From Vicugna vicugna (Eukaryota): 64,000 bases of DNA. The stretch is taken from NCBI GenBank assembly GCA_013265495.1, contig MU060965.1:496001-560000 (forward strand), read 5' to 3'. The position numbers were made by a program, and so were the translations under genes. The notes below the pieces were generated by a model, which saw nothing but the letters and a program-made list of their open reading frames with translations, ran no database searches and was not told the origin of the DNA. Of this stretch, positions 990 to 27,968 are shown one piece after another; within the stretch, counting starts at the first letter, position 1; each line of letters opens with the position of its first letter.

Positions 990-1325
<336 letters not shown>

Positions 1326-2345: not shown

Positions 2346-4469
2346 GCACACCTGATAAAAATAAAGTTTCTCTCAGGACTAACAAGGTACTGAGATGCAC
2401 TCAAGGAACAGGCATCATTATAACAGTATTTGTTGAAAATGAGGTTCTGGAGCATCGTTCCAGCTGGCAGGATTCTGAGAGATGTGGGAGCAAACAGCCC
2501 TTCAAAACTGGCACAGCTGGACCTGGGCTACTGGGACGCGGGCTCCCTCCCTGAAGGCAGCCCCTCAGACAGCCTCACCTAGGAGGAACAGCACCTTTGG
2601 CAGAAACAGTTACTGCTGACGGCTGAGATGCCAAGTCAAGCTGGGTCCTTCGGCTAAATCTGAGGCAGCAGAAACCCTGTCGAAGATGCTAGAAGCAACT
2701 GCAGACTGTCTGGCCTACGTCAGCGAAGAGCAGAGGGATGAGCTCACTGCCTCGTTCATCCAGTGTTTACTGAGCCCTGGCGGGTGCTACGAACCCCGCA
2801 GCCAGAGCCAGAGAAAGATGTAATGTCCCATTTACACTTCTACTGAGTTACGGGGACACAATGACACGTGTTATGTCACCAACGCAGAAAGAGGTGATGA
2901 TGTCTGTTCCAGAACTCTCGGCTGGCCGGCTAAGAAGGCACCGGTCCAAATCCGTCGCGTCTGGTTCCTTTGCGTACCTCCGGTATGTGTGCACTTTCCA
3001 TTTCAGTGCACTCAGTCAGGGAGGTAACTCGCGTCAGCACAGGCAAATTCTAATGTTATGAGATGTGTAACTTCCCACGAGGAAACAGCCACACTTAGCA
3101 GACCACGTGACACCTAAAAAGTGGGTGACCACGGCTGTGTATCCTGGGATGAGGCCCCGTAACATGGCGGTGGCTCCCCTGACGTGGGACCAAGACCCCG
3201 ACGTCCAGTGGTGAGCGTCTGAGCAGCAAGAACAGAGCCAGAAGACCACGACCCCAGAGAGAGCAACTCTAATGTTCTGACATTCTCGGCAGGCTCTGAG
3301 CACACGTGACTCAAATGTAACAGAAGAGACAGAGACCCGTGGGTGTTTGAAGAGCCCGTGTCGATCACAAATGCTCTGGTGTCTACAGGAAACAACTCAC
3401 ACAGCACCTTTTCCCCACTTGACTGTAGATCTCGGGAATAACAGGGCCGCAGGCCGCCACCGCTCACACAGGGTCACCCGAGTTCTATGACCTTCTCTGC
3501 ACAGAACACGACATGTCAGGCTCCGTGAAGCCTCGAAAGGTGCTGTAAAACTGTTGAGGTTTTCATTAAGTCAGCTCTTTTGTATAGAATAAATGCTCCC
3601 AGAATCACAGGCTTGCAGGTGGAGGAGGCCTCGGTTTTCCCTTTGGGGATGTGGCCTCGGAGGCCGCACTGAGGTCAGGAGACGTGCCCAGGCCCTGCAC
3701 CCAGGGGGCCGACCCCCAGACTGAGTCTCAGGCCTCACGCCCCCTCCCCTCCACAGCCTCTGTCCTCTTTGAAACTTTCTGTGCAAAAGGATGAGCGGTG
3801 CACACACCGCAGGTTCACACAAACCTCACGTTGCAGGTGATGCTTCCTGCACACTGAGCAAGTCACACATTCGGATGCGGCCCAAGCCACACGTTTTAGG
3901 CACACACTGTGTCTACGGGAACCCGGCAGTGAACTTCCTGTCTCCTGGGAAATGACCCCGATTTGTCTGTCTCATAAACTGGGTTGTGGGCCAGCAGCAG
4001 GCACACTTGTGACGTGAAGACCTTTCCAACCAAGGGAGGGTCCACGAGGAGCTTCTCAGAGCGCAGGGCGGGCAGCGAGGTGGACGGCTCACCCCCGGCA
4101 CGGCCCCCCCCTGCTGCTCCCAGCCGCACCGGACGGGCCCCCTGACAGGGCGAACCCGGGAGAAACCGGGCAGTGACGTGGGGCAGACACACCTCCTCCT
4201 GCGTGTGACGGGGAGGACCCCGTCTGGGATTTCTTGGGACAGTGACGTGTATCTTAGCTTCCAAAGGTGTGAGCCGCACGGGAGGGTGGGTACTCACGCT
4301 ATGGAACGTGGAAAGGAGCCAACATGACTTCTGAATCTATAATTTATCACACACAAAAGAAATCTTTTTCATGGAAAAATGCCTTTTCAAACGTAATAAA
4401 ATATATTTTTAAAAAAGCATCTTCATGAACCTTCTGAGGCAGGTCAAGTCCATCATGAGACGTGAAGCA

Positions 4470-4552
4470 GACCCGCTGGCTCGCGGGCAGTTAACTACAC
4501 GAGCCAACTGTGGTGTCGCATAAAATCAGTAAAACGATTCTCAGAGGGACAT
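4470..4552 (-). pseudogene. DCUN1D2: Possible DCUN1D2 exon 7 remnant
   Basis: Good acceptor TTTTCTCTTTAATCTTCTCTAG| followed by CGTTTTACTGATTTTATG, resembling the codons for PVLIDDFV. Confidence 0.35.
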
Positions 4553-5677
4553 CTAGAGAAGATTAAAGAGAAAACAGGTCTCAACTCTAGACATCTGGTA
4601 ATTGAAAAAATATGGACCTCAATCCTGGCACCAAGCGTCAAGCCGCCAGAGCCCGCGACAAGGAGCAGAGCAGAGGCGACAAGCCCTGACGGAAGAACTT
4701 CTCCCTGGAGAGAAAGAGACCAGAGACGCGGCGCTGAAAGGCGCAGCACGTCCCTGAGGACACGGCCTGGGGCTGAGACCAGACCTGTGAGCGGCGCTGC
4801 TGGCTTTAAAGCAAAAGGGAAACGTTTCTTTGGGCACCAGGCAAAAGCAGCAAGTGGCAGTAAGGGGAAAAGCAGACCGTCCTCAGACGATCCAAGGGCA
4901 CCTGAGGGGAGCGCAGCAGCGTGCGTAAGACACAGAAAGAAAATGAGGGCAAAGGCTTCATGTCAGGAAAACCGTTCTCCGCCCGCAGGGACTCGGGCAC
5001 CTCCTTGTGCTCGGGGTCCAGCACGAGCCTCAGGATCTAAGTGACCAGGACGCCGACGTGCGGACCGGTGACAAGACTCACCACCCGCACGACCACACGC
5101 CGCGACTGCACCCACGTCCAGAGGGAGACTCGGCCGTGTGCTCAGCGTGGACACAATCTACTCCTTTAATGGGGGAGAATGTACAACCTTTAAAGAGTTC
5201 TCAGTATTTATACCGACGGTGGCAGAAAAAAGGACATGCAGTTGTAACAGAAGAGCCGAAGTGGAAAACCCCAAAGCCCCGTAGTCCTGAATCTGAGCCG
5301 GGAGCATCAGCACAAGGAGCGGAGGACCCAGCCGACGCCAATGAGCATCTTGCTGCCTGGATCACGGCCCTGGAGCAAGATTCTCCACTGACAGAAACTG
5401 GGCTCCTGGGAGAAACGGCTGATCCCGGGCCTGGGGCGGGAATGGGCCAACCCGCCCAGCCGCATTGAGGACGGGGAGCGCGGCTGGGGACACAGACGGG
5501 CAGCCTAAGCTCCCGGTGTCAGAACTGCAGTCGACTGAACCTTCGCGTACGATTAAACCCAGGAGTTCACACAGCATAAAAGATAAATAAATAAACATGA
5601 ATCCTTTTTAAAGGATGCTACGAAAACAAGTCGTTATCTTGATGACAGGTGAATCCAGGCAAATGATCGGCACTTAC

Positions 5678-5740
5678 CCTGCCTTTTCTCAACGAACTGG
5701 GGCTCCTGGCAGCAAACCCTGGAAGGTGGAAGGATTATTC
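5678..5740 (-). pseudogene. DCUN1D2: Possible DCUN1D2 exon 6 remnant
   Basis: Strong donor CAGG|GTAAGT at 5677. An upstream pyrimidine tract ends TTTTG|GAATAA (AG lost). Internal similarity is weak. Confidence 0.25.
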
Positions 5741-7279
5741 CAAAAGAAGATGAGACGGAAGTGACAGAATTAGAACGTCACCCTCCACGCTGTGTGACGC
5801 CGGCTGAGCAGCGGCCTGGCCAGAGGCGAGGTCTGACCCTGACAGCAAACGCCACCTGCCGTGGTCCTGAAGCCAGAACCGCGTCCCCCAGGTCCCCGCA
5901 TGATGCCCACACAAGTGTTCACCCAACCACTCTGTCCGTTGCATGGTGACGCATCCCACCTGCCACCCCAGGGTGTCAAAGCGCTAGAGACAGTTCATAC
6001 ATTTTCCTCAGTCTTCCTAGCACGACTGAAATGGAAGACACCACCGGGGTTGGCAACCTGAGAGCAGGTCTCATGGGAGGGTCTGCAGGGTGGCAGGGGA
6101 CAAGACCAGGTTCCTGGCACCTGGACCCTCCCCAGTGTCCCGCCCTCGGCGGTCACTGCACCCCTGCGGGTGTGCTGATTCCTGCAGAGACAGCGCCTGC
6201 AGGTGGAAGGGAACGGGCTACAACACAACAAATACAAAACAGAACTGGAGCTGGAAGTATGGACGGGGTGTGGCTCCCCTGTGTGTGTGGGAGGTGACGC
6301 GGGGCGGAGGTGAACCCAGCACCAGACTCCCAGCATCTGTTTTGTCACCTGAGGGCCCAGTGCAGGGGCCGATGCATCCTCACAGCACTTCACAACAATG
6401 GTGACAGCGCCTGGACGGAGCCGTCTCCCCTTCGGGGACTGGTGCGTCCAGTCTGTCCTGGGCCATTCCTGCCCTGACAGCCAGGTGGGGCAGTGCTGCA
6501 AGGACTCCCCGGCCTTTCTGTCGCACCTGCTGCTTCCAATGGAGGTGGAGGCGTCAGTGCTGAGAGAGGTGTGGCTGCTCAGGACCCCGGAACCGCGGCA
6601 GGTTTCCCACACGAGACAGGAGCACAGCCCAGGACTCAACAGCCGAGACCGAGCCCCTCAGAACACGGGACGCAGGTGAAGGGGCAACACCTTGGCCCAG
6701 ACCCCGGCTGAGGGGGTCCTGGCGTGTCCCGGGAGTGTGAGAGCCAGTGGGAGGACAGATGGGAGGACGTGGAGGACAAAGACCAGGAGGAGGCTGAGCC
6801 AAGGCCAGCAAAACCACCAGAAGAGGACGGACAGGCGAGACAGGCCCGACTCCTCCCCGAGGGCCAGACCCGGGCTGCCGCCCGCGAACCTGAGATGCCC
6901 AGGGCTCCAGGCCACAGTCGCCACGGCCCCCAGAGCATGTCAGGCAGCCCACCAGGGAGGTGTGAGCACACGGATGGGGGAGGGCGGCCTCCACGCCTGC
7001 TGTCACGGCCCGTATTCCTGCCTACACCTCAGTCTCCCGTTTATAAAACGGGCCATGGCCACGTGTGCACCAGACGAGGAATGAAGCCAGTTTCTACCCT
7101 CCTTTCCGGGAACAGGTAAAAGACAGAAGCAGCCCACTGCCCGCTCAGGCCAGTCCCGTGTCTCGAAGACACAGAGGGATGCCAGCGAATCCGGGCGACA
7201 GGCTGCCTCCCCGCGCCAGCTGGCCCTCCCTGCCAAGCGGCCGATCTTAAGACCGCTGGCTGATCACACCCCGGCCGGA

Positions 7280-7362
7280 CAGACACGGAGATGGCCAATG
7301 CTCTCTGCCGACTCTCTAACCCATCGGCCAGTTACACATCAATATCAGCAACGGCAGGGCTT
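7280..7362 (-). pseudogene. DCUN1D2: Possible DCUN1D2 exon 5 remnant
   Basis: Acceptor-like TAGTTTTCAG| followed by GCCGTTGC..GTGTAACTGG, weakly resembling the codons for AVA..VLSG. Spacing relative to the next two remnants is plausible. Confidence 0.3.
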
Positions 7363-7959
7363 CTGAAAACTAGTTTACAAGTTAAAATGTGAATGTTTAA
7401 CCCCAGAAGGCAAGTGTGAATTGGCTGAGGTGTTCACCTGCTCGTGCAGAGCAAAGTGGGGAGAGAAAGAGACGCCAGCAGGACCCAGGTCCACCCCGCC
7501 CAGGGCTTCCTGCTCTCCTGACCCTCTGCCTCCCGGGGGAGTGAGCGCGAGGGTCCACCTGTAGTTTTAATCTCCCTCCTGCCCCCGCCGCCGCGGATGA
7601 GGCTGAGCGCCTGCTGTGTTCCCACCGGCCACCTGGAAATCACCTTGCGAAGGGCTTATTCCAGCCTCTTACCCGCTGTCAGTTAGGTCATCTTTTTCTT
7701 ACCGTCGTGTGGGAACCCTTCATCGGGGAGGCCCGCACACCCTCGTCAGCTTTTCGCCCTCTCAGACAGCACGTGTGCCCCTCTCCACCTCCTGAGGGCG
7801 CTCCTTGGTCAGAAGGCCGTATTTTCAGCCTGACACGCTGTCAGTCTCCTCCTCGGCGTTTCCTTGAGGACGTTTACAACCCTCCTACGCACGGCCATGA
7901 AGACATCCTGCCCCATTACTTTCTAAAGGTTCCTGCCTTCAGCCTCTGGCCCTGAGATC

Positions 7960-10400
7960 TACAGTCCACTTACCTGACTCTCACGTGTACGGGGAGGCAG
8001 AGGTCAAGATGAACTTTTTTCCACATGACTAGCAGCTCTCCTCGGACCAATTCCTGAAGGGCTGTCCTTTCCCCATCTGTCTACAGGATGTCTTTACCAT
8101 AAACCAAATGCACCTGTAGACGTGGACCTGCTTCTGGGCTCCCCATTCTGCCCCCAGTACCGTGTCGTCTTACTACATTTTCAGGTTCACTTTGTTTTCT
8201 TGCCCTGTTGCGTTCAGTGTTCTGAAATGTGGTGGTTCTCGGTTGCTGACAGTGGGTCCTGAAGTTTGGCTGAACTGGCTTGTGGATGCTAATGCTTTAC
8301 CAGCAGCTTGGACCAGCCGAGACCTCCGGTTCAGTGTTGACTGAAGGTAGGCATTCAAGTTCCAGTGAGTATAACATACAAATCGAGGCCCCAGACAGAT
8401 CAACCGAAACACCAGGATGACCTACAGGACAGAGTTCCACCTGGTTGCTAATACTTTGTTTAGGGTTGTGTGTGTTATGTCCATCTGATGGGCCTTTGAT
8501 TTTCGTGACCGAGATTGGCCTGTGATTTTCCGCCCTCAGGACGTCCTTCTAGGCTGCGCGCTGCTTGGCCAGGATTTCTAGTTTACTAGCGTAAGGCTGT
8601 TCTGACGTTCTCCTACCGTAACGTCTGTTGGATCTAGTGATGCTCCCTTTCGTGGTCTGTTGGTCGTTGTTCATTACTTTGTAAGCCTTTTCAAGTAATA
8701 AGCTTTTGGCTTTATGAACCCTTCCTATGTACACTTTTTTTCCTATTTCATTGAATTGCCGCCTGTTTAAAAACTTACTCCCTCTGTCTACTCTGAGTTT
8801 AATTTCCTGCTCTTTTCCTACTTGTTGAGATGGATGCTTGGCTTACTGATTTTCAGCTTTTCTTTCTGACATTTAAGAAGCTGAGTCCTGCAAGTTGTCA
8901 CATGCAGTGTTTTCTTCATCATTCACAATACTTTCTAATTTCCACTGTAAATTTTTCAACCCAAGGGTCCTTCAGAGGCACGACATTCACATGTATTTCA
9001 ACCTATCTGGTTATCTTTCTGTTACAGTCCTAGCGCAATCGGATTGTGGTCAGAAAACATGCTCTGCATCATTTCAATCCTTTGAAATTTGTTGTAACTT
9101 ACTTTATGGCCCAGTTTATGGTCAACATTTATAAATGCCCTGTGTGTCCTTTTGAAAAGGACATGTGTTCTTCAGCACCAAAGGCAATGTTCTAAGTATG
9201 CCCATTAGCCATTTGTTACGCCGTCCACATGTCCTACCTCCTCTACGGACCCACCCCTCGGTCAAATGTGAGAATCCCCCACTTGGCTTGCAGGTTGTAT
9301 CTTTCTCTTTAAAATGCCGATTTCTGCTGTAAATAAACCACTACCTTCCTGGTGGAAAAACCCTTGTCACTAAGAAACGTCCCCCATTATCTCTAGAATT
9401 GCTTTTTACTTTAAAGCTTATTTTATTATTGCTAACCACGTCAGCCTTTCCTGGTTAATGTCCGTACAACACACCAACTTCTGTCCTCCAAACTGTCCTG
9501 GGCCCTGTTTCACTTGTGTCTACTCTGCATAGTATACACAGAGGCTGGATTCTTAAAATCCACCTAACATTTCGTTCACTTACATTTAATGTAATTATGT
9601 AAATGCCGACACATCTGGGCTTAAACCCTCCGTTTATCTCTGCTTGCTGTTTGTCCTGCCGTAGGCTAACTTTCCTTGTGTCCTTTTTTTTCTTAGATTC
9701 TTTTGGACTGAGCTTTAAATTATTTTATTCCCCACTCTATTATTTAGAAAATATACAGAAATTATAATTCGATTTTTGTAAGGATTATAACATATACAGA
9801 GAGAACAAATATTTTTTCCCACTGCTTTATCTTTTCATTTTCTTGACAGTATCTTTTGATGAGCAGAGCTTTAACTTCGATGAGTCTAATTTGTCAATTT
9901 TTTTCCTTTACGTCAGTGCTTTTTATGTCTTCTCTAAGAAACCGTTGCTCACCCCAAGGTTACAAAGATAGTCTCTTATGTTCTGTCTAAACCTTTATAG
10001 TTTTCAGTGTCTTGTTCAAGCCCACAGTCTGGCCCAGCGTAATCTCTACAGACGGTAGAAGGGAGGACCAGGTGTCAGTCTGTGTTACCAGTTGTCACAG
10101 CATCACTTGTTGAAAAGACTCTTCTGCCCCCACTGAAATAATAAAAACTGACGACCAATCTTGCAATAGATGAATAAAGCAGGAAGACTTTACTAATTCA
10201 TGTCAAGACTGACTCTAAGTGGAACAGCAAGTAGGAATGTGCGGTGTTGGGGTAAAGACGAAAAACAGACCCACGACACAGCAGAGTCCACGCAACGGTG
10301 CTTGCTCTTTACAAAGACATCAAGGTATTTCATAAAGTTTCCCCGGTTCACCTAGGAAGCCTCACGCCCCAGTGAGAGAGTGCAGCGTGAACTGTGAAAG
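7960..10400 (-). mobile_element. Cluster of old L1 ORF2 fragments (mostly antisense; sense fragment at about 10140-10400)
   Basis: T-rich plus strand with L1 ORF2 hallmarks such as tttcaatcctttgaaatttgttg and cagcatcacttgttgaaaagact. Confidence 0.7.
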
Positions 10401-12040
10401 GCAGGTGCTCTGACCGGAGTCACGAGTCAGTAGCCAGGAGAAGTGATTAGCTGCCCTAACCGGGCAGACACAAAAGCCAGGGTGCCTCTCAGAGCCTCGT
10501 GCTGTTTAGACCAGAAGCAGACAGTCCTCTGCATCCCCGAAAGCACGAGGTTAAGTCTACAGCACAGTTACTAACACGTTCACACTTTCATTTAACATGG
10601 ACAGCGTCTGAATACTTACAGCTGCCCGCGAGCTGCAGCCAGCAGTCCCTCAGCCACCATCAGCCTGCAACCCTGACTCACGACCTGTGTGCTCCAAGAG
10701 GGCGTGAGGTCACCCACAATGTTTGGGGAGATTCACACTCCAAACTTTAAAAATGTAGTTTTAAAGTTATGACACTTAGTAGGATGATGGACAGGAACTT
10801 CAACAACCGACTTGTACAAGGTAGTTCTAGACAAAGCGTAAGAAATGCCCGTCAGCGTCTCTGTGAGGGGCGTTTGCGTCCAACGTCCCCCACCACGGGG
10901 CGGGTCCAACAGCAGGGATAATGGGCAGAACAAGGCCAACGGTGCCTCCTCCCAGGCGCTTCTGCCCCAGAACCGCCAGCCAGGCCTCGGGGCTCCCTCA
11001 GTGCAGGCAGCACGAACAAGCTCGCTGCTACGCCACCGTAACTGTGGTGGCTTTCATCTGGTCGGTTTTATACAACTACTGGAAGGTGGAAAGATACTAT
11101 GAGAATTAAAGAAAGTCTCACAGTGTATCATCTCAACAGACTCATGTTTAGTGAGAACACCACCACCCTGTCCACACAGTCTTAAGAACGTGTTTACCTA
11201 AGGCTTTCAAGCTCCTTCAGCAGCTAAAAATAAGTGAGTTGTCAACACTGAAATATCAGAGCATCAGAAAGTCAGCAAGCCGGCTCCTGCGCCCTGGTGA
11301 AATCATTCACGAGGCTTAACAATCACAAGATGCTTGTCGTGCACTTCTGTCTACTCGTCTGAGTCACTAACAAGTAAGAAACACCTTAAGGTATTAATGG
11401 AGCTTTTATTCAACCCTGTACGTAGAACAGAGAAATGTCACAGGCAAAAAAACAAATGACATTTTATTAGTGCTTAATATAGCAACACAATAAATTTAGC
11501 ACACAGTATTATGAAGTAAACTGAACGGCTGAAAACAGGCAAACAAACAAAAAAACCTGGATGTTTATTGTCAATTCAAAGCTGGAAGGAAAGAAATTGA
11601 AAGAAGAAAGTGAGCAGCTGCATCACTGTCTCGCCACGACTCTTTCCGTCTCATAAAACTACGGTGACCCGGCTCTTCCTCCCCAGACACTGGCAGCATC
11701 CGTTACCCCCCGTGCCCTTCGTCCCCATGAATTTGACTAATGGTGAGTTTTGTGTCATGCGTACTGTAACACAATAAAAAATGAAAAACTATACAAATTT
11801 TAAAAAAATGAAATGCATAAAATGCTACATAAGGGATTCATCTGAATAAGAATACTGAACAAAACTTTAGCTGAAATTCAAAAGAACAGCGAAGGCTTCA
11901 CTAATGGTACAAATGCGTGAGAAATCTGTGAAACGCACGAAGAACGTAAATCGGTGCAAACTTGCAGGCTGCTGAGAACCAACTCGCACTGGCCGTGCCC
12001 TCCTTCCTGCAAAGGGTCTAACTGAGACGAGTTTACTTAC

Positions 12041-12207
12041 CCGAGCTGTGTCATGCCGCCTGCAAATCCCTCTTGCTGCATCCACACCGACTCGCGGCCC
12101 CCAGTCTCCAGGCTGCACCCAGAACGCTGACGCAGCAGGACCCAGGCCGGAGCCACCACAGAGCCGCCGGGTACCCTCGGCTTCCACTGTATTTCCATCT
12201 TGCGGGC
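12041..12207 (-). pseudogene. DCUN1D2: DCUN1D2 exon 3 remnant (start of the PONY domain)
   Basis: Acceptor TTTTAACTGCAG| and donor CTCGG|GTAAGT. It reads PQDGNTVEAEGTRRLCGGSGLGPA / VSVLGAAWRLGAASRCGCSKR / FAGGMTQLG in three different frames. Length is 167 nt versus 169 expected. Confidence 0.88.
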
Positions 12208-14435
12208 CTGCAGTTAAAATTAAGGGGGAAAACGTTACACTATTTTGAAAAGTATCACTAAAGCGGTGGTGAGCACCACACCTCTACACGTAGTTCTACA
12301 AGCACGCTCAAATGCATCAGTCAAAGCAACTTTCTACGATACATGAAAGGGGCAGCAGCAAATACTGATTTATCCAGAAAATACTCTTATCTGAAAATCC
12401 AGCTTTCTGGGTTTAGGGGGAAAAAGTCACTGAAACTCCTTTGAAAGCTTCATCATTAGGAAAAAAATTTAATTTCCCTGAAGTAAAATGAAAAGTCACG
12501 TTTACAGAATTTTAGCAATTTAGGCAAACTACTACAAAACACACTGAGTTGGTGAAGTAGTTACAGTATGTTTTCATCACATCCTTGCCAAAGTAAAAGA
12601 AAGATCAATGCTTTTCTTTTAAAAGTGACTTCATTTGCTGGAGTTCTACTGCTATGCACAGCACATATTTTTCAGTCATTAAGCATCCACATTTAACAGC
12701 TTACAAATTCAGGCTCCCGCCTCCTTCCATTTCTACTTTAGAAATAAAATTAGGGAACTTAGCATTTCTCCATCAGAAAAATCAAACAGTGAAATCTCCA
12801 AGCCCTCACCCAAGCAGGTGGGGTGACCCGAGACCGCGCGTCTCCGGACTTGGCGTCACGACCCGCACGCTCACCTGCTGACTGGAAGGCGCCAACGGAA
12901 AACCTGGGCTCCTTTGCGCAAACGGATATTAAGTGCAGTAAACCCTCCTTCCATCACACAAAACTTAACATTTAAGTGCTAAATACCACGTTTTCACGTG
13001 TGTGTTGTTACCAGAGAAGAGCTGATGAGACCCTAATGAAGAAATCACAAAGGTCCTCCGTCTTTCCTCTCCCGGGCCAGGGAGGGAACCTGCCGCCCGG
13101 GCTCTCAGGACAGAGGCTTGGGGATGTGGTGACTCAGTGTCCTGCTCGGTCTGTGCTGCTGACGTGACAGACCTTGGGGACGGTGGAGAAACCGGTCCAC
13201 GCGGCCTCACCTCACAGCCGTCTTTTTAACGGTCACGTGTAACGGTCGTGACTGTGTCACGGTCACTGGGAAGCACTCGCTCATCTGCACGCATTGCTGG
13301 AGCAGCCGATGTGCCATCAGCAGCCGCTGAATCACACACTTATTGTGGGACCCAAAATGGCTGGACTGTGGACCTTAATAACCAGACCTACGCGAACACA
13401 GTTAAATGATGAAGGACGAAGCAGAAAGTAAAGAACGATTTTCATATAAAAATACTTTTCTGAAGAGGACTGAACATACTTGAATAACTTAAAAACCCCG
13501 CATAGCATATGACTGGAAAATTAGCTCAACAATTAACTTAGCCAAAAAAATTGAAAGCACACTGAAGCTTAATTGAAAACAATGTTCATTTTTTAAGAAC
13601 TACAAGTACAAATCTGTTTTTTTGACCACAGAACATGTTTTGGAACCAAGATTTTTTTTTTAAAGAATGGCAATTGTCAATCAATTTTTTGGATCTAAAC
13701 AGACAGATTAAAATACACATGGTTGTTTTCAAAAGTAAAAAGTGAAAATAATAAAAATTTAAAGCCAAGGGAACTTCAATTTCGGCTAATACTTGTTTAA
13801 ATGAGGGGTTTCGTTTCTGGTTTTCTATTTTTATGTTTTGGAAATACAAGATTAGCCTTAGAAACTGCTAGAAAGAAAAAATAAATCAACTCTGGAATTG
13901 CGGTGGCTCTCGCGGGACATCACAGCCCGGACACCTGAGGCAAGATTTTGCAGCCTGCTGAGCGCGCACTTCTCACGCAGATTTATTTCTGCAGCGAGAC
14001 TGCATCCCTACGGGAAAGGGTCATTTAAGTGCTGATTTTAATAAAAAGAACAACTGCCCCCAGCTCACAGCACGCGGCTCCCTGGCACGAGCTGTCCGGA
14101 CGCTGAGACAAGGGCAGCTGCTCCAGCAGCACCAGGCGCGCCAGGAGGAGGCTGGCTCTGCCCCTCGCACCGCAGCTACTCTTAGGGTTTGCTCCCGCTC
14201 TTGACCAGTCTCTTCCCAGCTCTCCCGGCCTCAGTGGAGCTGCTGGGAAGACACTGCACCTCCTGGCCTGGACCTAGTTGTGGGGCAAGGCCCACCGGCA
14301 GCAGACAGACAGTGGGCTCCGGGTTGTCTGGTCAGGGCAGGAGTCCCCCCCGGCCCGTCTACCGGACCCCAACCGGCTCTGCCTGAGCACCGAGTACCGC
14401 CAGGGAAGGAGGTGGGAGACGGACCCCGTTCTTAC

Positions 14436-14597
14436 CCCTGCACGCGGGGGACAGCTGCCCCGCCTGGGCTCCGGGTCAGGAGGAGCCGTCCTGGCCTCAG
14501 GCAGGTTCCACGCATTCCAGGCCGAGCAGCAGACGCGGTTCCCTGAGGAAACGTCACACGCCAACAGACCCACCGGCTGAGACAAGTCGAGCTTGTG
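14436..14597 (-). pseudogene. DCUN1D2: DCUN1D2 exon 2 remnant (UBA-like domain)
   Basis: HKLDLSQ..LLAC..CCSAWNAWNLPEA aligns with HKLKSSQ..FMAC..YCLTQNEWRLDEA. The acceptor reads CCGGG|CAC (no AG) and the donor is G|GTAAGA. Length is 162 nt versus about 217 expected. Confidence 0.8.
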
Positions 14598-15199
14598 CCC
14601 GGCGGGTGGAGAGGCAGGAAAGCCTGAGTCCGCGTCCGTCCCCGGCGCCCCTGCCGTGACTGACTGCTCTTAGTCTTTCTTTGCTGGGTGGTCCACTTCC
14701 CTTCAAATTTCAGGGTGACAAAGCCTTGTTCTTCATCAGTTAAGAGGGCTGCACCGTCTTCTGAAGTGGAAATGCGTGTCCACGTAGTAACCAGGATGCA
14801 AAGGCTGGCCTTCAGAAGAGTGTAAGAACCAACCTTTTATGCAAAACACGTTTTGATCTCTATCCAGCCGCTTCCCATGAAGAAGGGCAGTTTTTTTCCC
14901 AGGTCTCAGTGACATCCCTCTTTATAAAACACATGCACCCTCTGATGAGATGAGGCCTGACACCACCTCAGCTCATCTGCGGTTTCCCTTGGCTTCAATC
15001 AATGTCAGGCCCTAGAGAACAGGAGGAGGGCCTTGCAGTTTGGAGATATTTTTATTTTAAGTTTTCTCACTTTAAAATTAGCAGAACAACACTGATGAAA
15101 ACAAACACATGCCACAGGGTTAAAAATAATCGACAGAAGTTCCAAACGCAGGCTCAAAAAGCCTGTTATAACTCAATGAAGATGATACTAAAAACAAGG

Positions 15200-15530
15200 A
15201 TGCCTGTGCACATGACAGAACTAAAACGGTAAATACGAAACAGAAATGGACTCACAGACATAGAACACAGACTCATGGTTGGCAGGGGGTGGGAAGGGAC
15301 AGACTGGGATTTCAAAATTGTAGAACAGATAAACAAGATTATACTGTGTAGCACAGGGAAATATACACAAGATCTTGTGGTAGCTCACAGAAGAAAAAAT
15401 GTGACAATGAATATATGTATGTTCATGTATAACTGAAAAATTGTGCTCTACACTGGAATTGGACACAACATTGTAAAATGATTATAAATCAATAAAAAAG
15501 GTTAAAAAATAAAAAAATTAAAAAAGTTCC
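15200..15530 (+). mobile_element. Young L1 3' end with poly(A) tail, camelid-type
   Basis: cagaaatggactcacagacatagaac...tgtgctctacactggaattggacacaacattgtaaaatgattataaatcaataaaaaagg followed by an A-rich tail. Confidence 0.8.
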
Positions 15531-17029
15531 TGATATCTATATTTAAAAAGTAAAAACTAATAGGTGAAATTAATGTTTTATTGGATTTAACATCCCAAGT
15601 ATTGTCATTTCAACATCTAATAAACATAAAAATTATTGAGATATTTAAAAATAAAGAAAGAAAGAAAACAGAAAAGCAGGGCAGAGGAAAAGCAGGGCAG
15701 AGGCTGCGGATGGGTGGTAAATAACAAACTGCCAGGTAACTGCACTATATATAGTTTATAATGAAACAGAATACCATCTGAACGCTTCCAGACATTGATG
15801 GTTAAGGTTTTATTTATCCAGGGTAACCTGATGAGAAAGACACCAGAAATGAAAGTGATTCACTAATTTCTATAAGTCAAAACAGACTCTGTAATCTACG
15901 CGTCACACGGTCACGTGATCAAGGGACTTCTACTCAGTCTTGCTCAGAAGCAGATGAGGCAGCTTGCAGAGCACACAGGGTAAGCGGCAGCTTGCAGAAC
16001 TGCGTGCTGGAAAACGAGATGCAGGTGGAGGGATTGAGAGGCGGCACAAAGGGATAAGACACAGGCACGCGCACCATGCACAAGGGCTGGCGTGAGCTGA
16101 AAACCAGGCTCCCAGCTGCCATCGCAAAGAAAATACCATCAGTCAGGAAAACTCGTTTTCATAAGACTTAAAAACCCACCAGCAGCCAGAGTGGCCCAGC
16201 TCCTCCTGGCCCTGAAACCTGACGGAAGTGGCAACTTGAAATGTCCCCTCTGCACCAGACCAGCTTCTCCCCAGACGCCACCAACCAACAGCAGCGCAAA
16301 CTGCCAAAGCTTTCCCTGCAGCAACCCACGGTCCTGCTGCTGGGAAAGCGGCAGAGAGCAACGGAGCCGGGGGCATGGAGTCAGCCCTCGCGCTGCTGCC
16401 CAAGTGTGGTCTGGGGTCCCTGGGGTCCTGAGACCCTTCAGGGTTTCCCCCATCACAAAACTGTCCTCAAAATGACCAACCTGTGATCCACCTTCTCACC
16501 TTGGCTGGCGTATAGCAGAGGCTCCCAGAGGTTGCTCGACTGGTGGTGATATCACAACAGACTGAACGCAGAAGACCTGGGAACCTAACTTTTATTACGC
16601 CAGACATTAAAGATACTTGCAAAAGTGTTATGTAAATAAGCAACGGGTTTACTACTGTCATATTTAGATGTATAAATGTTTTTAAACTTCCCATTTTAAC
16701 ATCTGACCCAGTGAACACGACGGCCATGAGCTGCTTCTGCAACAACAGCTCCTTGGGATGCAGTCACTTTAAAGTACACAGGGGGCCTGAGACTTGGAGG
16801 TTTGAGAACCGCTGCCCTGGGGTGACGCAGGGAGCTAACATTTTGGCCACGCAGAACAATGACTGCCGATCATCTGGGGTCTTGCGTCCCTTTTGGAATC
16901 TGATGAAAGTCCCAGATCCTTCCTTCAGGAAATACACGTGGTCCACGCGTGAGTATGTGGTTTTGCCCATATTGGCTTCTCAGAGGCCGGGGAGGGTGGA
17001 GCTCGGGCTAGGAACCCAGGAGCTGGGTC

Positions 17030-17390
17030 AGGATGCACAAACAGCATTTGGTGTACACGTGGGATGAATTCAACCACGGAAAGGAAAGAAGCAGGGACGT
17101 ACTCCATGACGTGGGTGGACCTCAGAAACACGATGCTGAGCAGAAGTCGGACACAAAAAGCTCACACACCGTGAAGTGTCCAGGACAGGCAAATGCACAG
17201 GGACAGGGGCGGGGAGAGGCTGGGGGTGACAGTTTGGTCAGATCGGGTTTCCTCTGGGTGATGGGAGTGTTTTCAAACTCGACGGAGGTGGTGGCGGCAC
17301 AATGCTGTGAGCGTGCTAAACACACTGAACTGTCCACTCTGAAAGAGTGAACAACATGCTGTGTGGATTTCAGCTCAAGAAAAAGTCAAC
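17030..17390 (+). mobile_element. L1M 3' end
   Basis: gtggacctcagaaacacgatgctgagcagaagtcggacacaaaag...aaacacactgaactgtccactctgaaagagtgaac. Confidence 0.7.
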
Positions 17391-17889
17391 ACGGCAGCCT
17401 TAGAACCTCGGAGACTGGTCCACAGAGGACGGCCCCGTCAGGTAACCAACTCGTCCAACTGAGGATGGGCCCAGGGGACGCGGACAGGCACCTGGCAGGT
17501 GCAACGATGTCGACGATCTCTCGAGGCACTTCTGACAGAGTGGCCGCCTCTCCCGAATCGTGGCAAAGCAGCTGCAGGACAGTTCAGAGAGAACCCTCCC
17601 TCTGAGCGAGAGGGAACACAGGGCAGAGTGAGGTCCACTGCAGGGCCACACAGTGTCTCAAGGGTCACCACCACCTTGTTACAGGGGGCAGAAGGGCAGA
17701 CGGAGAACCAAACAGACCCTCCTCACGTTCTGCCAAGTGCCTGCCGGGTCCCAAGACCTCCCCACCTCAAACCTCAAAGTGGCATGAAGGTACTGGCTCT
17801 GAGAGGGACAGAGCCATGGGTCTGAGCTGGGCTCACAGCAGGCTCTGGGCAGAAGGAAAAGGAGGGCGCTGTCAGTGAAGTTTCAACAA

Positions 17890-18125
17890 TTTGGTGTCAC
17901 CCTTACTGGGATCGGACAGTCATCCGTAGCTAAGTCTAACCTCCCGACAGGTAAACAACAAGATCCTCCTGCAGAGCACAGGGAACCACAGTCAGTGTGG
18001 TGTGAGCACCCATAACAGAAAAGAATACGAGAACGTGTATCTGTGTGTAACCGATTCACTATGCCGTGCCCCAGAAACTAACACAACGCTGCAAGTCAAC
18101 TGTATTTCAGTAAAAAAGAAAGAAG
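17890..18125 (+). mobile_element. Laurasiatherian L1 3' end
   Basis: aacaagatcctcctgcagagcacagggaacc...gtaaccgattcactatgccgtgccccagaaactaacacaacgctgcaagtcaactgtatttcag followed by an A tail. Confidence 0.75.
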
Positions 18126-18829
18126 ACATGTGCTCCATGTCCAAAAGTGACAGAGAGACTCACGTTGCAACACGGAAAAAAGAGAACTGGCATAAAGCTT
18201 TCTAGGAAAAAAAAGCCTCATAAAACTAAAAAATCACAGGGGAAAAAAAGCTCGGGGTCCATTTAGACAAAACTAAATCCACGTAAACTAGTAGAAGTCC
18301 ACACTCGGCAGGACTGGGGCCCGCCCTTCCAGCTCTGCCTGGCTCCAGTAAGGCTTCCTGCCAAGGAAGCTAAATTATTGACGCAACTCTTACGGCAGGT
18401 GGAAGGGGGTTTTCTGCTTCACTGTCTTATCCTGTTGAAACGCACAAAATCCTTGAAGTAAAAATCTGGATAATCCAGGAGAAAAGTCAATTAAATTCTC
18501 GAGCCCAGGGAAAAAGCCTCAAACGTTTAACTGTGACCTTGTGAAAAATCACTTATATGACTGTGTATAAAAAAATAATCACTCTTAAAATGTCTTTCCA
18601 GAGACACCACACAACAAAATCTTCTCTTGGGGCAACTTGGAGGGGCTCCCGGGCATCCTCCTGGCCCCATGATGGCACTGACGGTCACCTCGGCTGTTTC
18701 GAGCAGAGCAGGTTGGGGCGCACGGGGTTGGACCTGAGAGTCCCCCCACTCTCTCGGCCCTCCAGCCTGCCCAGCCCCTCCCCTGGAGCTGGGGAGAGTG
18801 GTCTCCATGGGCAGAGGTGAGAGCATACC

Positions 18830-19870
18830 TGACATGCTCCCCCCCAACCCGGTTCCTCGGTTTCCGGGACCACACTCTCTGGTCCTCCCACTTTTCTGAC
18901 CAGCTCTTCTCCATCTCCCCCTCGGCTGCTTGCCCTACCCTGAAGTTCTGTTCTCCCGCCTCCACTCCTTCTCCTACAAGGCCTCCTGGACCATCTCTCT
19001 CCTGCCTGAACCCTCCCAGCAGCCTCCCTCCCTCTACCGTGAGAACAAAGACAGACGTCCCCTCCTGTGCCCCAGACCACCACACACCCGGGTCTGGGGC
19101 CCTCACCTGCCTCCTGCTGGGTCTCTGTTCCCTGGCTTTCTGGGCCCAGCCAGGGGGTCTTCCGATCTCCTGTCGTCCAGTCGCGTTTCCCACCCAGGGT
19201 CTGCACACGTCTGGCTGCCCCTCCTGCCCCCATCCACGAGAGCTCAGCTCACGCCGTGTTACTGTGGCTAAGCCTTCACTGCCTCCGCATGGGACCCCAC
19301 CGTGCAGGTTCCTGGGGCCTGGGCCTCTCCCTGGCGCTGCCCCATCTGTAATAAACCAGCTGTGTGTTCAGCACCTGCCTGTCCTGCTAGGACAGCAGCT
19401 CCATCAATACCAGATCCACGTTCGTCTTGCTCAGCAGCGAACCTCCAGCATCCTGCACTGCACCTCTCTTGCACACAGAAACTGCTGAAACCCATCGTCC
19501 ACCGTGCTTTCCACTACATTTCAAAATAACTGCACGTTTCCCAAATCTTCTCTCCTGAGCTCCAGACCTGCATCTCTCAGCAGCTACACGAGCCCTCTTT
19601 TCCCCTCGTTGGTGTGCTGTCCTCCTGCACAAGCCTCCTCTTCCCTCTACAGCCCCTGTCACGGTCAATACGACCACCACTGGACGTCCTAGCGAGGAAC
19701 TGCAGAGGCCCTTTCTCTCCCCTCCCCGCCATTTCTGAATAGTTCTGTAAGATTGCTCGCCCTCCCTCTCTCCCTTACTCCTACAGGCTCAGGTCCTCAC
19801 CCCTTCTTGCCTAGGCTCTTGTAACAGCTTCCCAGCTGGTCTCCAGTGCCCACCACCCTGACCTCCCTCC
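18830..19870 (+). mobile_element. Ancient L2 remnant
   Basis: C/T-rich L2 RT-like text (ggtttccgggaccacactctctggtcctcccacttttctgaccagctcttctcc). Confidence 0.5.
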
Positions 19871-20439
19871 CACCCAGTTCCCATTGTTTTGACAAAAGGC
19901 TTTTTGAAAACAAAGCTCAAAGGGGATCACTCCACACACAGCGCTCCTTCTTGCAGATCTTCCCGGGCTCCAGTGCTCTCCTGGAGAGACTACGCTCCTC
20001 AGCAAGGAACACAGGGCCTGATTCCGAGTCCTGCCGTTCCCGACCCTGAAGTCCAGGTTCCAGTCACCTGAGCCACTGCCAGTGCTCAAAGGCGCTGTCC
20101 CGTCCACTTCCTCTCTCACCAGACGCTCGCCCGCCCGAAACGTCCCTCCCTCCCCGTTCACCTGGCTGCTTGGGCTTCCAACGGAGCGCTGCTCCGAGTC
20201 CCCCGCCGCTCGGGGCCTGCATCTCGTCCACGATAACCTGCACCGGGGTCACTGGTCAGGCCCCCGCTGCGTGCCTCCTAGCCTCCGGCGGCGCCCTCCG
20301 CGCGCGAGCCGCCCCGGCCCGGCCCCAGCACCGGGCCCCCAGCCCAGGTCCTTCCCGGACTCCCTCTCCCGCCCCTCGGCGCTCCCCCAGCCCGGGCCCA
20401 GGAGGAGCCGAGCAGGAGGCGATGCCGCGGGCCACCTAC

Positions 20440-20442
20440 CAT
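20440..20442 (-). pseudogene. DCUN1D2: DCUN1D2 exon 1 coding part (ATG only) with donor
   Basis: Minus strand reads GGGGAGAATG|GTAGGT inside the CpG island. DCUN1D1/2 have an ATG-only first coding exon. Confidence 0.75.
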
Positions 20443-20573
20443 TCTCCCCGGCGCTCACCAGCTTCTCGCCGGCCCCGACCACCTCCCGCCCCGGCCCGGC
20501 AGCGCCGTCCGAGTCCTTGTCCTCAGCCCCCGGGACACCCGCGCGGTGAGGTGGCCGCAAGTCCGGGCCGCGA

Positions 20574-20660
20574 GACTCCAACTCCCGGCGTGCACTGCGC
20601 CGCCCGGCGGCCGACGGGATCCAGGCCGCAGGCCGCCTCTGACTCCCGACGTGCACTGCG
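20574..20660 (+). promoter_or_regulatory. Two ZNF143/Staf (SBS)-like sites within a 61-bp-period direct duplication
   Basis: GACTCCAACTCCCGGCGTGCACTGCG (20574-20599) and ACTCCCGACGTGCACTGCG (20642-20660) resemble ACTACAAnTCCCAGnATGCA(C/T)YGCG. Confidence 0.6.
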
Positions 20661-20899
20661 CCGCCTGGGGACCGACGGAACCCACGCCCCGCCTCCTTAA
20701 AGGGGCCGCGACGCTCTCCTGGCTGCGTCGGCGCAGACGGCGTTCTGAGAGGGCTGCGGGCGGCCAGGGGCCTCCCGGTGACTGACCGCGTCCCCATCCC
20801 CGTCCCCGCCCCTGGGGCGGCCCCGCCGCCGTCTGGGAAGGGATGTGGAGAAGCCGTGTCCGTGTCCTGCCCTCAGCCTCGGGCGCCGCAGAGCCGAGC

Positions 20900-21347
20900 C
20901 CTGGACGCGCCGCGGCCGGAACGTCCGGGTGAGCGCTGCGCGGCGTTCGGCGCTGGGCCTCGGGTGCGGCCTGAAGTGCGGCCCGCGGGGCTCCCTCCCG
21001 GGCTCCGCCCCGGGGTCTCTCCTCCCTGGGGCCTCTCCGCCCCGAGCCTGCCTCCGCCGGGGGTCTCCTCTCCCCTCCCCGGGGGTCTCCTCTCCCAGCC
21101 TGGCTCTTCGCTCAGCCCCGGCCCGCTCGCCCCCCTCCTCCTGGCGGTGCGCGGGGACGGTTTTGCACCTGCGGGCCCTTTTCCAGACCCGCGCACCTGG
21201 CGGTGGCCCCAGGATGGCGGTGGAGGTGCGGCCCCGGAGGGTGCGATGGGGGCGCCGGCGGGAGCTGCTCCGCCCGCCTTGAGTCGCTGGTGAGGCTGCG
21301 GACGCCGCCAGCCGCCGCCTGGACCAGTCGGCACCCTCCGGCGTCAG
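20900..21347 (+). other. TMCO3: Probable non-coding exon 1 of TMCO3 (5' end uncertain)
   Basis: Lies in the CpG island; candidate donor GGCGTCAG|GTGTGC at 21347/21348. Confidence 0.45.
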
Positions 21348-24300
21348 GTGTGCGGCGTGAGCGGGCCCCTCGCGGTCCCGGCTCCACACCTGCCCCCAGG
21401 CTCCTTTCGGGTGTCGCCGTCAGCGCCTGAGTGCAGGCCTGGGGCTCGAGCGTGCGCTTATCCAGGTACAAGGCGGCTTCGCCTGGTCCCCGGAAATGGG
21501 GACGCACGGTGAGCGCCGCGAGTGCGTCTCCTGCGGGGTCCAGCTGCTCCGGGCGGGCGCTCCGAGGACGGCTCCGGCGGTGGGGAGCTGCGCTGGCGTG
21601 ACTGCGGAGAGGGGGCTTGCAGACCGGCGCGCGTCTCCGTGGCAGGTTGCTGCTGGTCCCGAGGAACGGTGTCAGCTTATGATTTTAGTGCTTTCCTAAG
21701 TGTAGAAGAGGCAGGAATCCGGGTTCCTAAACGTTTTCCCTGAAGTGTAACTCGGTTTTGCCTGCTTTTCCCCCAGCACAGGATGCCTGGTCCCGTATTC
21801 CTTGTGGGCTGCGCTGTGGGTCAGCGACTCCAGCGCCTGACGACGTGACATCGTAGAACCTGGTGGGAGGGACGTTTTTAGTTGACAGCCTTCTCACATT
21901 TATACGTTTTTCTGATCATTTTTTGGATCAGAGTGTCCGAATTTCTTTTATTAGTGTCTCAGTGATTAGGTTACTTAATGAAATAATTGTATTTTGTAGG
22001 GTTTGGTTAACATGAAATACTTTTTTCTTGTTTGTATTTTTTCCTTCCTCTCCCCCTTTCTTACCTCATCTCCAGTTCCTTTACTAACACGAATCAACCA
22101 TAAGTTGTATTTACAGGGTTGTAAGTGCTTTATTTTAAGAAGTACACTGTACTTCATTCAGTTTGTTAAAGGGTGAAGTATGCTCTTCAAGGAAGATCCT
22201 CCGCAAGTTACACTGAGGTGGGCTCCTTCCACTGGGGGGTCTCTTCTCTCCCTTAGGCCTTTCCACAAGCTCCTCCTTCGTTACCTGTTTCCTGCCCGAC
22301 CTGGAGGTATTGGAGGTGTCAGGAAGGAATTCTCATTTTAAACCGTCTGCTACAAACACTCCTCAGTTTCGTTTTTTTAGAGGTGTAACTAGTGCTATAC
22401 CCGTTGACCTGTTCCAGCCACATCCATACTGCTTGTTCCAGAATTTCCTGCCCAGAGCCCGGGGTGGGCACATTCGGGACCAGGTCAGTGCCCCCACACT
22501 TAGGGCCCGGGTTCAGCTGGGTGGACAGGGCACCTGGGGCAGGCTGTCCCAAGAGCCTGGCCAGTCAGCCTCTGCCCAGCAGACAGTGGCTGCTATGCTA
22601 GTGAGTTGAATAAACTAGATTCTTTTGCAGCAGTTTGACCCTCCTCAGGGTCCCTCCTGCTGCCTTGTTACAGCCACTGCCTCTGCTTCCCAGACCCCAG
22701 ACAAACACAGAAAGTATTTGTTTTGAAAAATGTTTAAAGTGACCGTCCTGAAGACAGGCTCTAATTCTTTCTTTTGAAACAGTAGAAGCTTAGCAATTAA
22801 ATGAGTCATTAAAATAACAAGTCAACCATATTGCCAGGCTGTGATAGGTCAATTATTTATTTTTAAGGTGGTAACATTTACTTTAAGTTGTGTTAAAAGC
22901 AAACTCGAGTAATTCCAACAGCCCCTTCTCATTCACCTGCCTCAGCGGGGAGGCAGGGAGTTCAGAGTCCTGGATGTGTTAGGTCTGTGTAACGTTAGGA
23001 GCCAGCGTATCTAAACCTGAATTGCAGTGGAAGTCTCCTGACTTTTTAAGCAGAATGCTGAGCCAGAACAGTCCTTAGTGGGTGACTTTTGATTGCCATT
23101 CTGAACATTGGCCGCTCTCCCGTCCTCCCGTGGTGATCTTTCCAGGGTCCGTTGAGGTGTGTAGAGCAGTCAGCGCTCCCCAGACCCCGGGGCTGCTACT
23201 GTTGGCTGAGTTCTTTTGTGTTCTCATAAGCTCTGTTTGGTCTGCACTTTCTACTGGCGTCACTTCTCGGTTTGATCAGAATTTTCTCTCTAGAAACACA
23301 CTCTCACTTTTGCTGCATCTAATCTTCTTTGCCTGGGAAACCAGATTAAACTCATTAGACTTTGGGTTTACAGGTGAAATTAAAATAATAGATATGTTGT
23401 GAAATAAACAAGTCCTGTGGAAACAGCAAGTTTTGTTTTATTTTTGGAGTAAGGACTCGGGCCTAGTGGCTGGGTTTAGGGATGTGTTTTAGAGCGTGTC
23501 TTCCCAAGGTCTCCTGTGGTGGTCACTCCTCCCTTATGCCTGCCCCCCATCCCCACCCCGCTCTCCTGCCTGTGAGGCAGTCCTGTCTCAGTGGCCTTGC
23601 TGATGCAGCTTCCACCTGCCCCTTGATCGCCCTCCTCTGGGCGCTGCCCACCCGAGGGCCTGGGGCTCGCGCCCAGGGGGCCTGTCTGTGCCCTGCAGAC
23701 CTGGATAGATTTGTATGTACTTCTCAGGGAGAGGACCAGGAGTCGGGAATCGGACACAGAATGTGCTCTTGGTCATTGTATTTTGTGGGGTTTTTTCTTT
23801 TTTCTGTCCTTGACATCTTGCTAGCATCTGACTGTGATTGATGGCGATTTGGACAGAATTCTGGATGACTCTGGGAAGCCAGCAGCACAGCAGAGCCGGT
23901 CGGAGTAGCTCAGTTTCCCCTGCGCACCCACAGCGCTGGCTCCCGGAGCCGCTTGCCTGGGTGGGGAGCAGGTGGTGTTTTCTGGCCTCTGATACACAGA
24001 CGCTCTTAGATAGAGTTGGTTTTTGTCTTTTGCACAGGGTAGATTTAGGAGATACATGAGGCTGAGTTTTCCTTAAAAGAATTGCCTTTCAATTTGGATG
24101 TAACCTTTCATCTCCACTGTCCACCAGGTATCACACCCTGTGACGCAGTATTTGACTACAGTCCAGCTGTAATAAATTGTTCAAATGTGAATGTTAACTT
24201 AGGAAAAATGACGTTTTCCTCAGAAAAGTGATCGTTTTTAGTAATTACTTAAAAATTAATCTCAGTAATGAGTTGTTCAACTATATGTGACCATAAATCT

Positions 24301-24387
24301 CTTTCAGCTCAAAATGTGCATCTAACATGCAAGCCAAGCTCAGCAGACGTCTTTGGACTGCGCTGCCCTGTCCTCAAGGATCCAATC

Positions 24388-24831
24388 ATGTGGGGCTTGG
24401 GAGGGCTCCTCCTGTGGCTGCTGCTCCCGCCCCTTCCCCTGCCAGCGGGCGCCGCGGAGCATGAGGAGGTGGCGAGGCAAGCCATCAAGTTGCACCGGGG
24501 CAGAGGGGTGGCGGCCACCCAGGGCCGGCGGTGGGTCCTGGATGGATGCAGGAAGCTCTCTGGGCTTCTTCGCCAGAAGGCTGTGGTTCTTAACAAACTG
24601 AAAAATGCAATCAGAGCCGTGGAAGCTGACGCCAGCCTCTCGGATGAAGAGAAGCTGTTCCAGGTGCACACGTTTGAAATCTTCCAGAAAGAGCTGAATG
24701 AGAGTGAAAACTCAGTCTTCCAGGCCATCCACGGCCTCCAGAGAGCCCTGCAGGGGGACTACAGGGATGTGGTCAACATGAAGGAGAGCAGCCGTCAGCG
24801 CCTAGAGGCCCTGCGGGAGGCAGCCATCAAG
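24388..24831 (+). CDS. TMCO3: TMCO3 first coding exon (exon 2): signal peptide + coiled coil
   Basis: Acceptor CTCTTTCAG| at 24307 and ATG at 24388. Reads [13 protein letters not shown]...[17 protein letters not shown]...LREAAIK, 444 nt, donor |GTCGGT. Confidence 0.95.
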
Positions 24832-26416: not shown

Positions 26417-26596
26417 GAGGAGAGGGAATACGTGGAGCTTCTGGCAGCAGAAAAACGTCAAGCTGAAGCCCTTAAACACCTGCAGCATCAAAACAAGAGC
26501 TTATCCATCCTTGACGAGATCCTGGAAGACGTGAGGAGGGCGGCCGACCGCCTGGAGGAGGAGATAGAGGAGCATGCCTTTGATGACAACAAGTCG
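26417..26596 (+). CDS. TMCO3: TMCO3 exon 3
   Basis: CCAG|[13 protein letters not shown]...AFDDNKS|GTGAGT, 180 nt. Confidence 0.96.
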
Positions 26597-26759
26597 GTGA
26601 GTGGCCGCCGCCCTGCCCGCTGGACTCCCCAAGCGGGCGTGCCATGGGGCTTGTTCGTGGGTGTGTTTTGAGTGCAGCTGGAACGTGAAGAGGAAAGCGC
26701 TGTGTGCCTTAGAAGGTGATGGCGTGGCCTAGCAGAGGGACGCGGTGTCCCCCGACTGC

Positions 26760-27490: not shown

Positions 27491-27669
27491 CACCGAGTTA
27501 GATGATGTGGGTCTTTGGAAGTAGCAGAAATCCTAAACACGTCCATCTTTAAATCACTTTTTTAAGTGAAAAATTTTGCCTGATTTTCTAATCTGTTGGT
27601 CTTTTGCCACACTTGACAGAATGCTAAAATCATTCCTCTGTAAAGGGTTTACTCTGAAGTTTGAACTTG

Positions 27670-27925
27670 AAAATGTCTCATTTGCAGCAACATGGATGCT
27701 CCCGGAGAATGTCATTCTAAGTGAAGTAAGCCAGAAAGAGAAAGAAAAATACCACATGAGATCGCTCATATGTGGAATCTAAAAAACAAAAACAAAAACA
27801 AACAAACAAAAACAAAGCATAAATACAGGACAGAAATAGACTCACAGACAGAGAATACAGACTTGTGGTTGCCAGGGGGGTGGAGGGTGGGAAGGGATAG
27901 ACTGGGAAGACAAAAAGAAAGAAAA
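27670..27925 (+). mobile_element. Short young L1 3'-region fragment
   Basis: tcatttgcagcaacatggatg..ctaagtgaagtaagccagaaagagaaag..gtggaatctaaaaaac..gactggg followed by an A-rich end. Confidence 0.8.
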
Positions 27926-27968
27926 CGTTTCGTCGGTTTTAGTAACGTAACGTGGGTCTTTCTTACAG

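Follow-up and report, generated by a model that had tools for sequence, protein, structure and literature searches.

The stretch of Vicugna vicugna DNA analysed here, 64 000 nt long and called the window below, contains a short sequence that resembles exon 3 of DCUN1D2 and changes reading frame twice. It raises the question of whether DCUN1D2, the gene for DCN1-like protein 2, is dead at this locus, how much of it is left, and why the residues that can still be read look so different from those of other mammals. A sequence-only reading of the window had called the gene a unitary pseudogene. That reading is supported here, and the damage turns out to be wider: the synteny is ancestral, exon 2 is wrecked, exons 4–7 are traceless, and orthologues are intact elsewhere. 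We regard it as very probable that this is the ancestral DCUN1D2 locus and that its gene is a long-dead unitary pseudogene.

Position of the locus

The pig chromosome 11 locus was aligned to the window, with a run at sensitive settings included. Pig 77–1183, the CpG-island promoter region common to TMCO3, matches window 21089–20034; collinear blocks follow through DCUN1D2 introns 1–3; pig 27756–28099, directly past the pig DCUN1D2 stop codon, matches window 4659–4308; and pig 31512–32684, in ADPRHL1, matches window 1457–244. Between these anchors the pig coding exons lie at 5959–6174 (exon 2), 7979–8149 (exon 3), 16070–16198 (exon 4), 24955–25038 (exon 5), 26063–26164 (exon 6) and 27387–27464 (exon 7). 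Collinearity with pig runs from the TMCO3 promoter as far as an intact ADPRHL1 exon 1, and the window therefore contains the ancestral DCUN1D2 locus in full. The arrangement is that of human DCUN1D2 (Q6PH85; PDB 4gao), with an orthologous position head-to-head with TMCO3 and upstream of ADPRHL1, and with the same exon boundaries.

Both edges of the locus can be recognized. At one end a CpG island at 20000–21500 (no strand assigned; GC 0.63–0.81) aligns with the intergenic promoter region between pig DCUN1D2 and TMCO3; exon 1, which contributes the ATG only, was not located within this promoter region. At the other end, a remnant of the 3′ UTR region (4308–4659, minus strand) is homologous to pig sequence just 3′ of the stop codon and marks the far edge of the missing part of the gene. 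Beyond it lies ADPRHL1 exon 1 (1029–1265, minus strand), an intact open reading frame 80% identical to pig, which bounds the locus as its downstream neighbour and serves as the intact-neighbour control for the decay of DCUN1D2. The Weddell seal locus is likewise collinear with the window over exons 2–3, and the introns are about 65–78% identical to pig and to seal alike. There are no runs of N below position 59941 of the window.

Some repeats of the region may be recorded here. A minisatellite at 2148–2379, between the DCUN1D2 remnant and ADPRHL1, holds 11 copies of a CACCTGCACGTCAGACA-type unit at a spacing that alternates between 19 and 15 nt. Two pairs of L1 3′-end fragments were seen (15230–15297 with 27820–27887, and 18038–18094 with 56481–56537); the L1 3′ ends in the window are of the laurasiatherian type that is found in artiodactyl, perissodactyl and carnivore genomes. 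With the SINE probes used, no family was recognised in the 64 kb, and Rfam and ARAGORN yielded nothing diagnostic of a species.

The exon 3 relic

The exon 3 relic occupies 12041–12207 on the minus strand. Its splice sites are intact, with an acceptor ...ctgcag| ending at 12209–12208 and a donor |gtaagt at 12040–12035, so delimiting an exon of 167 nt where orthologues have 169 nt, as had been read from the letters. Homology to DCN1-like proteins is split over three frames, about 25 codons in the first, about 21 in the second and the final 8 codons in the third. When the exon is read with an X at both breaks, phmmer against PDB matches it to residues 16–71 of DCN1-like protein 2 (4gao_A, E=3e-8), and DCN1-like protein 1 (3tdu_A) is matched about equally well.

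Orthologous DNA was reached via protein fragments matched by this PDB-aligned exon 3 peptide, and gave four sequences for comparison: two Logan carnivore contigs (L001 and L008), the Weddell seal locus (L014) and the pig locus (L017). In all four the exon is 169 nt long with an open frame. Nucleotide alignment with these intact exons places exactly two 1-nt deletions in the window, at about 12133/12134 and about 12066/12067, neither of them in a homopolymer. The claim that homology jumps frame twice is thus borne out both by the three-frame translations and by the DNA, and the earlier comparison with a 169-nt human exon is extended now to intact 169-nt exons in pig, seal and two further carnivores. 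The TGA that had been said to end the middle frame is present (12053–12051) and closes the second frame, the middle one that bears homology, but the frame actually entered at the start of the exon has no in-exon stop. The changes at conserved residues that had been quoted, GIQQFCDDL>GTRRLCGGS among them, are correct, and roughly one in two residues of exon 3 differs from DCN1-like protein 2.

Three negative searches concern this sequence as it now stands. A 138-aa stop-free stretch over the broken exon had no match in the protein database; exact look-ups of the 53-aa and 66-aa open reading frames over exon 3 found nothing; and neither did a 24-mer scan of metagenome contigs for the broken exon.

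Exon 2 and exons 4–7

Of all the damage to DCUN1D2, the exon 3 frameshifts are the least. The relic of exon 2, the exon of the UBA-like domain, lies at 14436–14597 on the minus strand, between syntenic blocks of intron. Aligned jointly with pig and seal, it shows GG in place of the acceptor AG. Deletions of 2, 10, 2 and 41 nt relative to pig have removed about 55 nt in total, and the internal ATG of Met16, which carnivores and pig use for a 244-aa isoform, now reads GTG. Neither tblastn nor a profile HMM gave a significant protein match to the UBA-like domain (PF14555) at this relic. Because its DNA score is not above that of shuffled sequences, its identity as exon 2 rests on synteny and on short collinear matches. 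A plus-strand UBA-like match at 13230–13406 (HMM E=0.33) was dismissed as chance, having no DNA similarity to exon 2 of pig or seal.

Exons 4–7 encode residues 131–259, and with them the entire Pfam Cullin_binding domain. They are expected in window interval 4660–8970 (minus strand), where no exon homology is detectable; the corresponding pig sequence, 12817–27756, spans about 15 kb and faces only about 4.3 kb of the window (8971–4659). Neither tblastn with four DCN1-like proteins nor blastn-short found anything of these exons in the window. Smith–Waterman scores were 10–13 against a shuffle null of 11–12, exon 3 scoring 54. A profile HMM was made from 40 DCN1-like proteins of full length; when it was searched with --max against all 944 stop-free segments in window 1–22000, it matched pieces of exon 3 only. 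Motif and BLOSUM scans with remembered DCUN1D2 motifs likewise revealed none of the four exons, in agreement with the later searches that used retrieved proteins.

In pig DCUN1D2 the Cullin_binding domain (PF03556) covers residues 136–246, corresponding to exons 4–7, and UBA_4 covers residues 10–48. The Cullin_binding (PONY) domain binds the cullin and the NEDD8 E2 UBE2M, and makes the protein a NEDD8 co-E3. As this domain lies in exons 4–7, all of them traceless, the part that binds the cullin and the NEDD8 E2 is wholly missing here. No continuous DCUN1D2 reading frame remains: exon 3 has lost 1 nt at two places, the deletions in exon 2 break the frame and the downstream exons are absent. A functional DCN1-like protein 2 from this locus is impossible.

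The sequence between 4000 and 8000 is broadly GC-rich, with many 150-nt windows at 0.60–0.71, and no homology was detected between it and the pig interval whose place it takes; it may be either heavily converted intron or lineage-specific sequence.

Presence in independent samples

Damage of this kind could be an artefact of assembly or consensus, with the 1-nt deletions as polishing errors and the missing exons as a collapsed or misjoined region, and the large lesions do rest on a single assembly. Words sampled from independent sequencing runs speak to the smaller ones. Of the 31-mers of window 11500–12800, 136 were sampled, and a fraction of 0.90–0.97 of them was held by 14 DNA runs from six studies under three organism labels; six runs of organism C held all 13 of the 13 sampled 31-mers of the 167-nt exon 3. 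Organism C also has very large single-cell libraries made by targeted-capture RT-PCR, a type employed in nanobody discovery, which fits a camelid. Judged by these shares of sampled 31-mers, a consensus error in exon 3 is very unlikely, the larger lesions being read from this one assembly. Further, the deletions fall outside homopolymers, the locus is free of N runs, and a substitution load of 27%, a lost acceptor and a lost ATG are unlike polishing errors. An artefact is, overall, a very improbable account of the locus.

In RNA-labelled runs under organism labels D and F the share of words present was constant, at 0.31 for the exon and about 0.25 for the 1.3-kb region, although the many runs differed greatly in size. 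Such a constant fraction is what would be expected of a relative diverged by about 4% that carries the same decayed sequence in unspliced RNA. We infer that the decay is older than the divergence of the camelid taxa sampled, and probably older than the split from Old World camels as well; the latter would follow for the New World/Old World camelid divergence if D and F, known here from coded labels only, are Old World camels.

The same D and F runs, together with metagenome runs labelled ‘reproductive system’ and ‘liver’, hold intron words as well as exon words of window 11500–12800. This suggests either an unspliced transcript through the dead gene or carry-over of DNA into the libraries.

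Substitution pattern

Exon 3 has diverged in a strongly directional way. At the 145 sites where the three carnivores agree, the window differs at 38, and 31 of these differences are A/T to G/C (W>S; 16 A>G, 13 T>C and 2 T>G) against four in the reverse direction (S>W). With pig and seal as references, 45 changes are specific to the window lineage, 7 to pig and 4 to seal. The GC content of the exon is 0.66, against 0.42–0.49 in the orthologues.

The excess forms a hot zone at 11900–12207 (no strand assigned), which takes in exon 3 together with the initial ~140 nt of intron 3, and where W>S changes per W site reach 0.40 compared with 0.16 in the flanks (63/159 against 52/321 pooled, Fisher p=3e-8). 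By bin the rate is 0.49 at 12100–12199, 0.29 at 12000–12099 and 0.40 at 11900–11999, the last of which is all intron, with flanks at 0.11–0.22. S>W changes are not raised (0.08 versus 0.14 in the flanks), and the implied equilibrium GC is 0.83 in the hot zone versus 0.53. Exon 2 behaves alike, its W>S rate per W site being 0.53 (31/59) against 0.15 in three intron blocks (116/785, p=1e-10). Both exon relics thus accumulated W>S changes at 2.4–3.6 times the rate of flanking introns, a rate that may itself be somewhat underestimated as it was taken from alignable columns only. The GC patch at exon 2 spans 14000–14650, passing beyond the exon and well into intron 2, and GC-rich patches are dispersed across the whole DCUN1D2 locus.

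One way to load exons in particular with G and C would be non-allelic conversion by a GC-rich processed (intronless) pseudogene, overwriting exons only. Such a donor would account for two exon relics with a much heavier W>S load than most of the compared intron stretches, and for the sharp upstream edge of the exon 3 hot zone, where the rate rises from 0.21 to 0.49 at the acceptor. Yet the zone passes the donor site by ~140 nt into intron 3, at W>S rates of 0.29–0.40, the exon 2 patch reaches well into intron 2, and tblastn and the profile HMM found no second DCUN1D2 copy within the window. Exon-restricted conversion from a retrocopy was rejected because the hot zones cross exon boundaries, and we assign it next to no probability.

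As far as substitutions can tell, the pattern points instead to GC-biased gene conversion that worked in patches on DNA already evolving neutrally. In exon 3 the W>S rate per W site is 0.35 at codon position 1, 0.50 at position 2 and 0.33 at position 3. Positions 1 and 2 show no deficit, just as in neutral DNA, and nothing indicates purifying selection while the burst lasted, so that most of it likely came after constraint was lost. The proposed order of events is that constraint would have gone first, and that the relics of exons 2 and 3 would then have come to lie in patches of intense GC-biased gene conversion, of a kind typical for this GC-patchy region, where ~40–50% of their A/T sites may have been converted to G/C. 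Residue changes look extreme because about that share of the A/T sites in both exons became G/C; the striking replacements are due to a GC-biased substitution process, and not to anything specific to the protein.

The order might also be reversed, with conversion as the killer: a recombination hotspot on exons 2–3 would have fixed deleterious A/T to G/C amino-acid changes in the face of selection and so disabled the protein, the indels and the large deletion coming later. The elevated W>S rate in both relics and the implied equilibrium GC of the hot zone would suit this account, as would the finding that the exon 2 region is unusually diverged also in carnivores in which the gene is still annotated (proteins P0113/P0114, and seal). 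Against it stand the missing deficit at codon positions 1 and 2, the disregard of the hot zone for the exon 3 donor boundary and the spread of GC-rich patches over the whole locus; a single genome, moreover, cannot give the order of events. We consider this order unlikely and prefer conversion of a gene already dead.

DCUN1D2 and DCUN1D1 in other mammals

Proteins annotated as DCN1-like protein 2 are found in Sus scrofa, Phacochoerus and Equus, and in carnivores, bats, pangolins, primates, rodents, rabbit and elephants. Camelids are represented differently: among the best 120 of 794 matches and in 18 clusters, the sole camelid entry is DCN1-like protein 1, from Camelus dromedarius. This bears on the idea that a functional DCUN1D2, as a relocated duplicate or a retrocopy, exists elsewhere in the genome and that the locus in the window is its abandoned parental copy. 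Within the matches and clusters just named the camelid result is a weak negative for such a copy, and the wreck occupies the ancestral syntenic position. We give an intact copy elsewhere little chance.

With the gene dead at its ancestral position, its loss is presumably tolerated because the close paralogue DCUN1D1 supplies the same co-E3 activity. Mice lacking Dcun1d1 are viable, and in testis lysate of such Dcun1d1-/- animals Cul3 neddylation is restored by recombinant DCUN1D2 but by neither DCUN1D4 nor DCUN1D5 (PMC6336273). Compensation of the camelid loss by DCUN1D1 is therefore plausible. The literature searched contained no report of loss or pseudogenisation of DCUN1D2 in any lineage; the loss is apparently unreported, and is in itself an ordinary natural knockout.

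Comparison with known cases

Set beside human DCUN1D2 (Q6PH85), the locus is a relic without a reading frame, its UBA-like exon mutilated and its Cullin_binding exons absent. It resembles other lineage-specific unitary pseudogenes of mammals in that a single-copy ancestral gene has suffered several independent disabling lesions at a syntenic locus, while neighbouring genes are intact (here ADPRHL1 exon 1) and orthologues in sister orders are functional. Unlike typical cases, the decay is unusually deep, half of the gene being gone, and it carries a strong A/T to G/C overlay, which gives the residue changes a more striking appearance than neutral drift would have produced by itself.

Mouse Fxy/Mid1 reportedly underwent an episode of GC-biased gene conversion after it entered the pseudoautosomal region, and primate accelerated regions with a W>S bias are known episodes of the same process. 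As in these episodes, the W>S burst here is localised and directional, S>W changes are not raised, and exon/intron boundaries are crossed. The difference is that the target is a dead gene and that a recombination hotspot, to which we would tie the burst, is read solely from how the substitutions are distributed.

Provided that the genome has no intact copy in another place, camelids would naturally lack one of the two NEDD8 co-E3s of the DCN1 family that contain a UBA domain. Such a knockout, if true, would argue that DCUN1D2 is dispensable given DCUN1D1, and would predict an unusually strong dependence of camelid cells on DCUN1D1, which is relevant as DCN1 inhibitors are in development. The locus also illustrates that an old pseudogene exposed to GC-biased gene conversion can look stranger than plain decay would leave it, and it advises caution in automated screens for gene loss and positive selection in GC-patchy regions.

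Carnivore DCUN1D2

If conversion did kill the gene, and if this region is likewise wearing away the UBA-like exon in carnivores, the two together would be a case of recurrent gene death by biased conversion and not by relaxed selection. Several observations on carnivore sequences are set out here in their own right.

Exon 2 of DCUN1D2, with the UBA-like domain, is strongly diverged in carnivores also (MAFPHRGQRSAVCCVTQDEW...; proteins P0113/P0114; Weddell seal L014:9876-10096). Aligned with pig, the seal exon has two 1-nt gaps, of which one falls in the coding part of the 244-aa isoform; these gaps may reflect genuine erosion of the N-terminal domain or a fault in an old assembly. The canid models P0300, P0495 and P0496 (Vulpes vulpes, V. 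lagopus and Canis lupus familiaris) are all flagged ‘LOW QUALITY PROTEIN, partial’ by NCBI, which may point to problems with the frame, or to GC-rich sequence left unassembled, in canids as well.

One of the two Logan contigs that supplied an intact exon 3, L001 (protein P0071), is from a carnivore, as the head of a CAN-SINE at the start of the contig indicates, and is 81% identical to seal. In its exon 3, three residues that are otherwise invariant have been replaced in unusual ways (AWRFGAA, FMAGMT), and two of the three lie at positions that are also changed in the window. The shared positions look like parallel W>S change.
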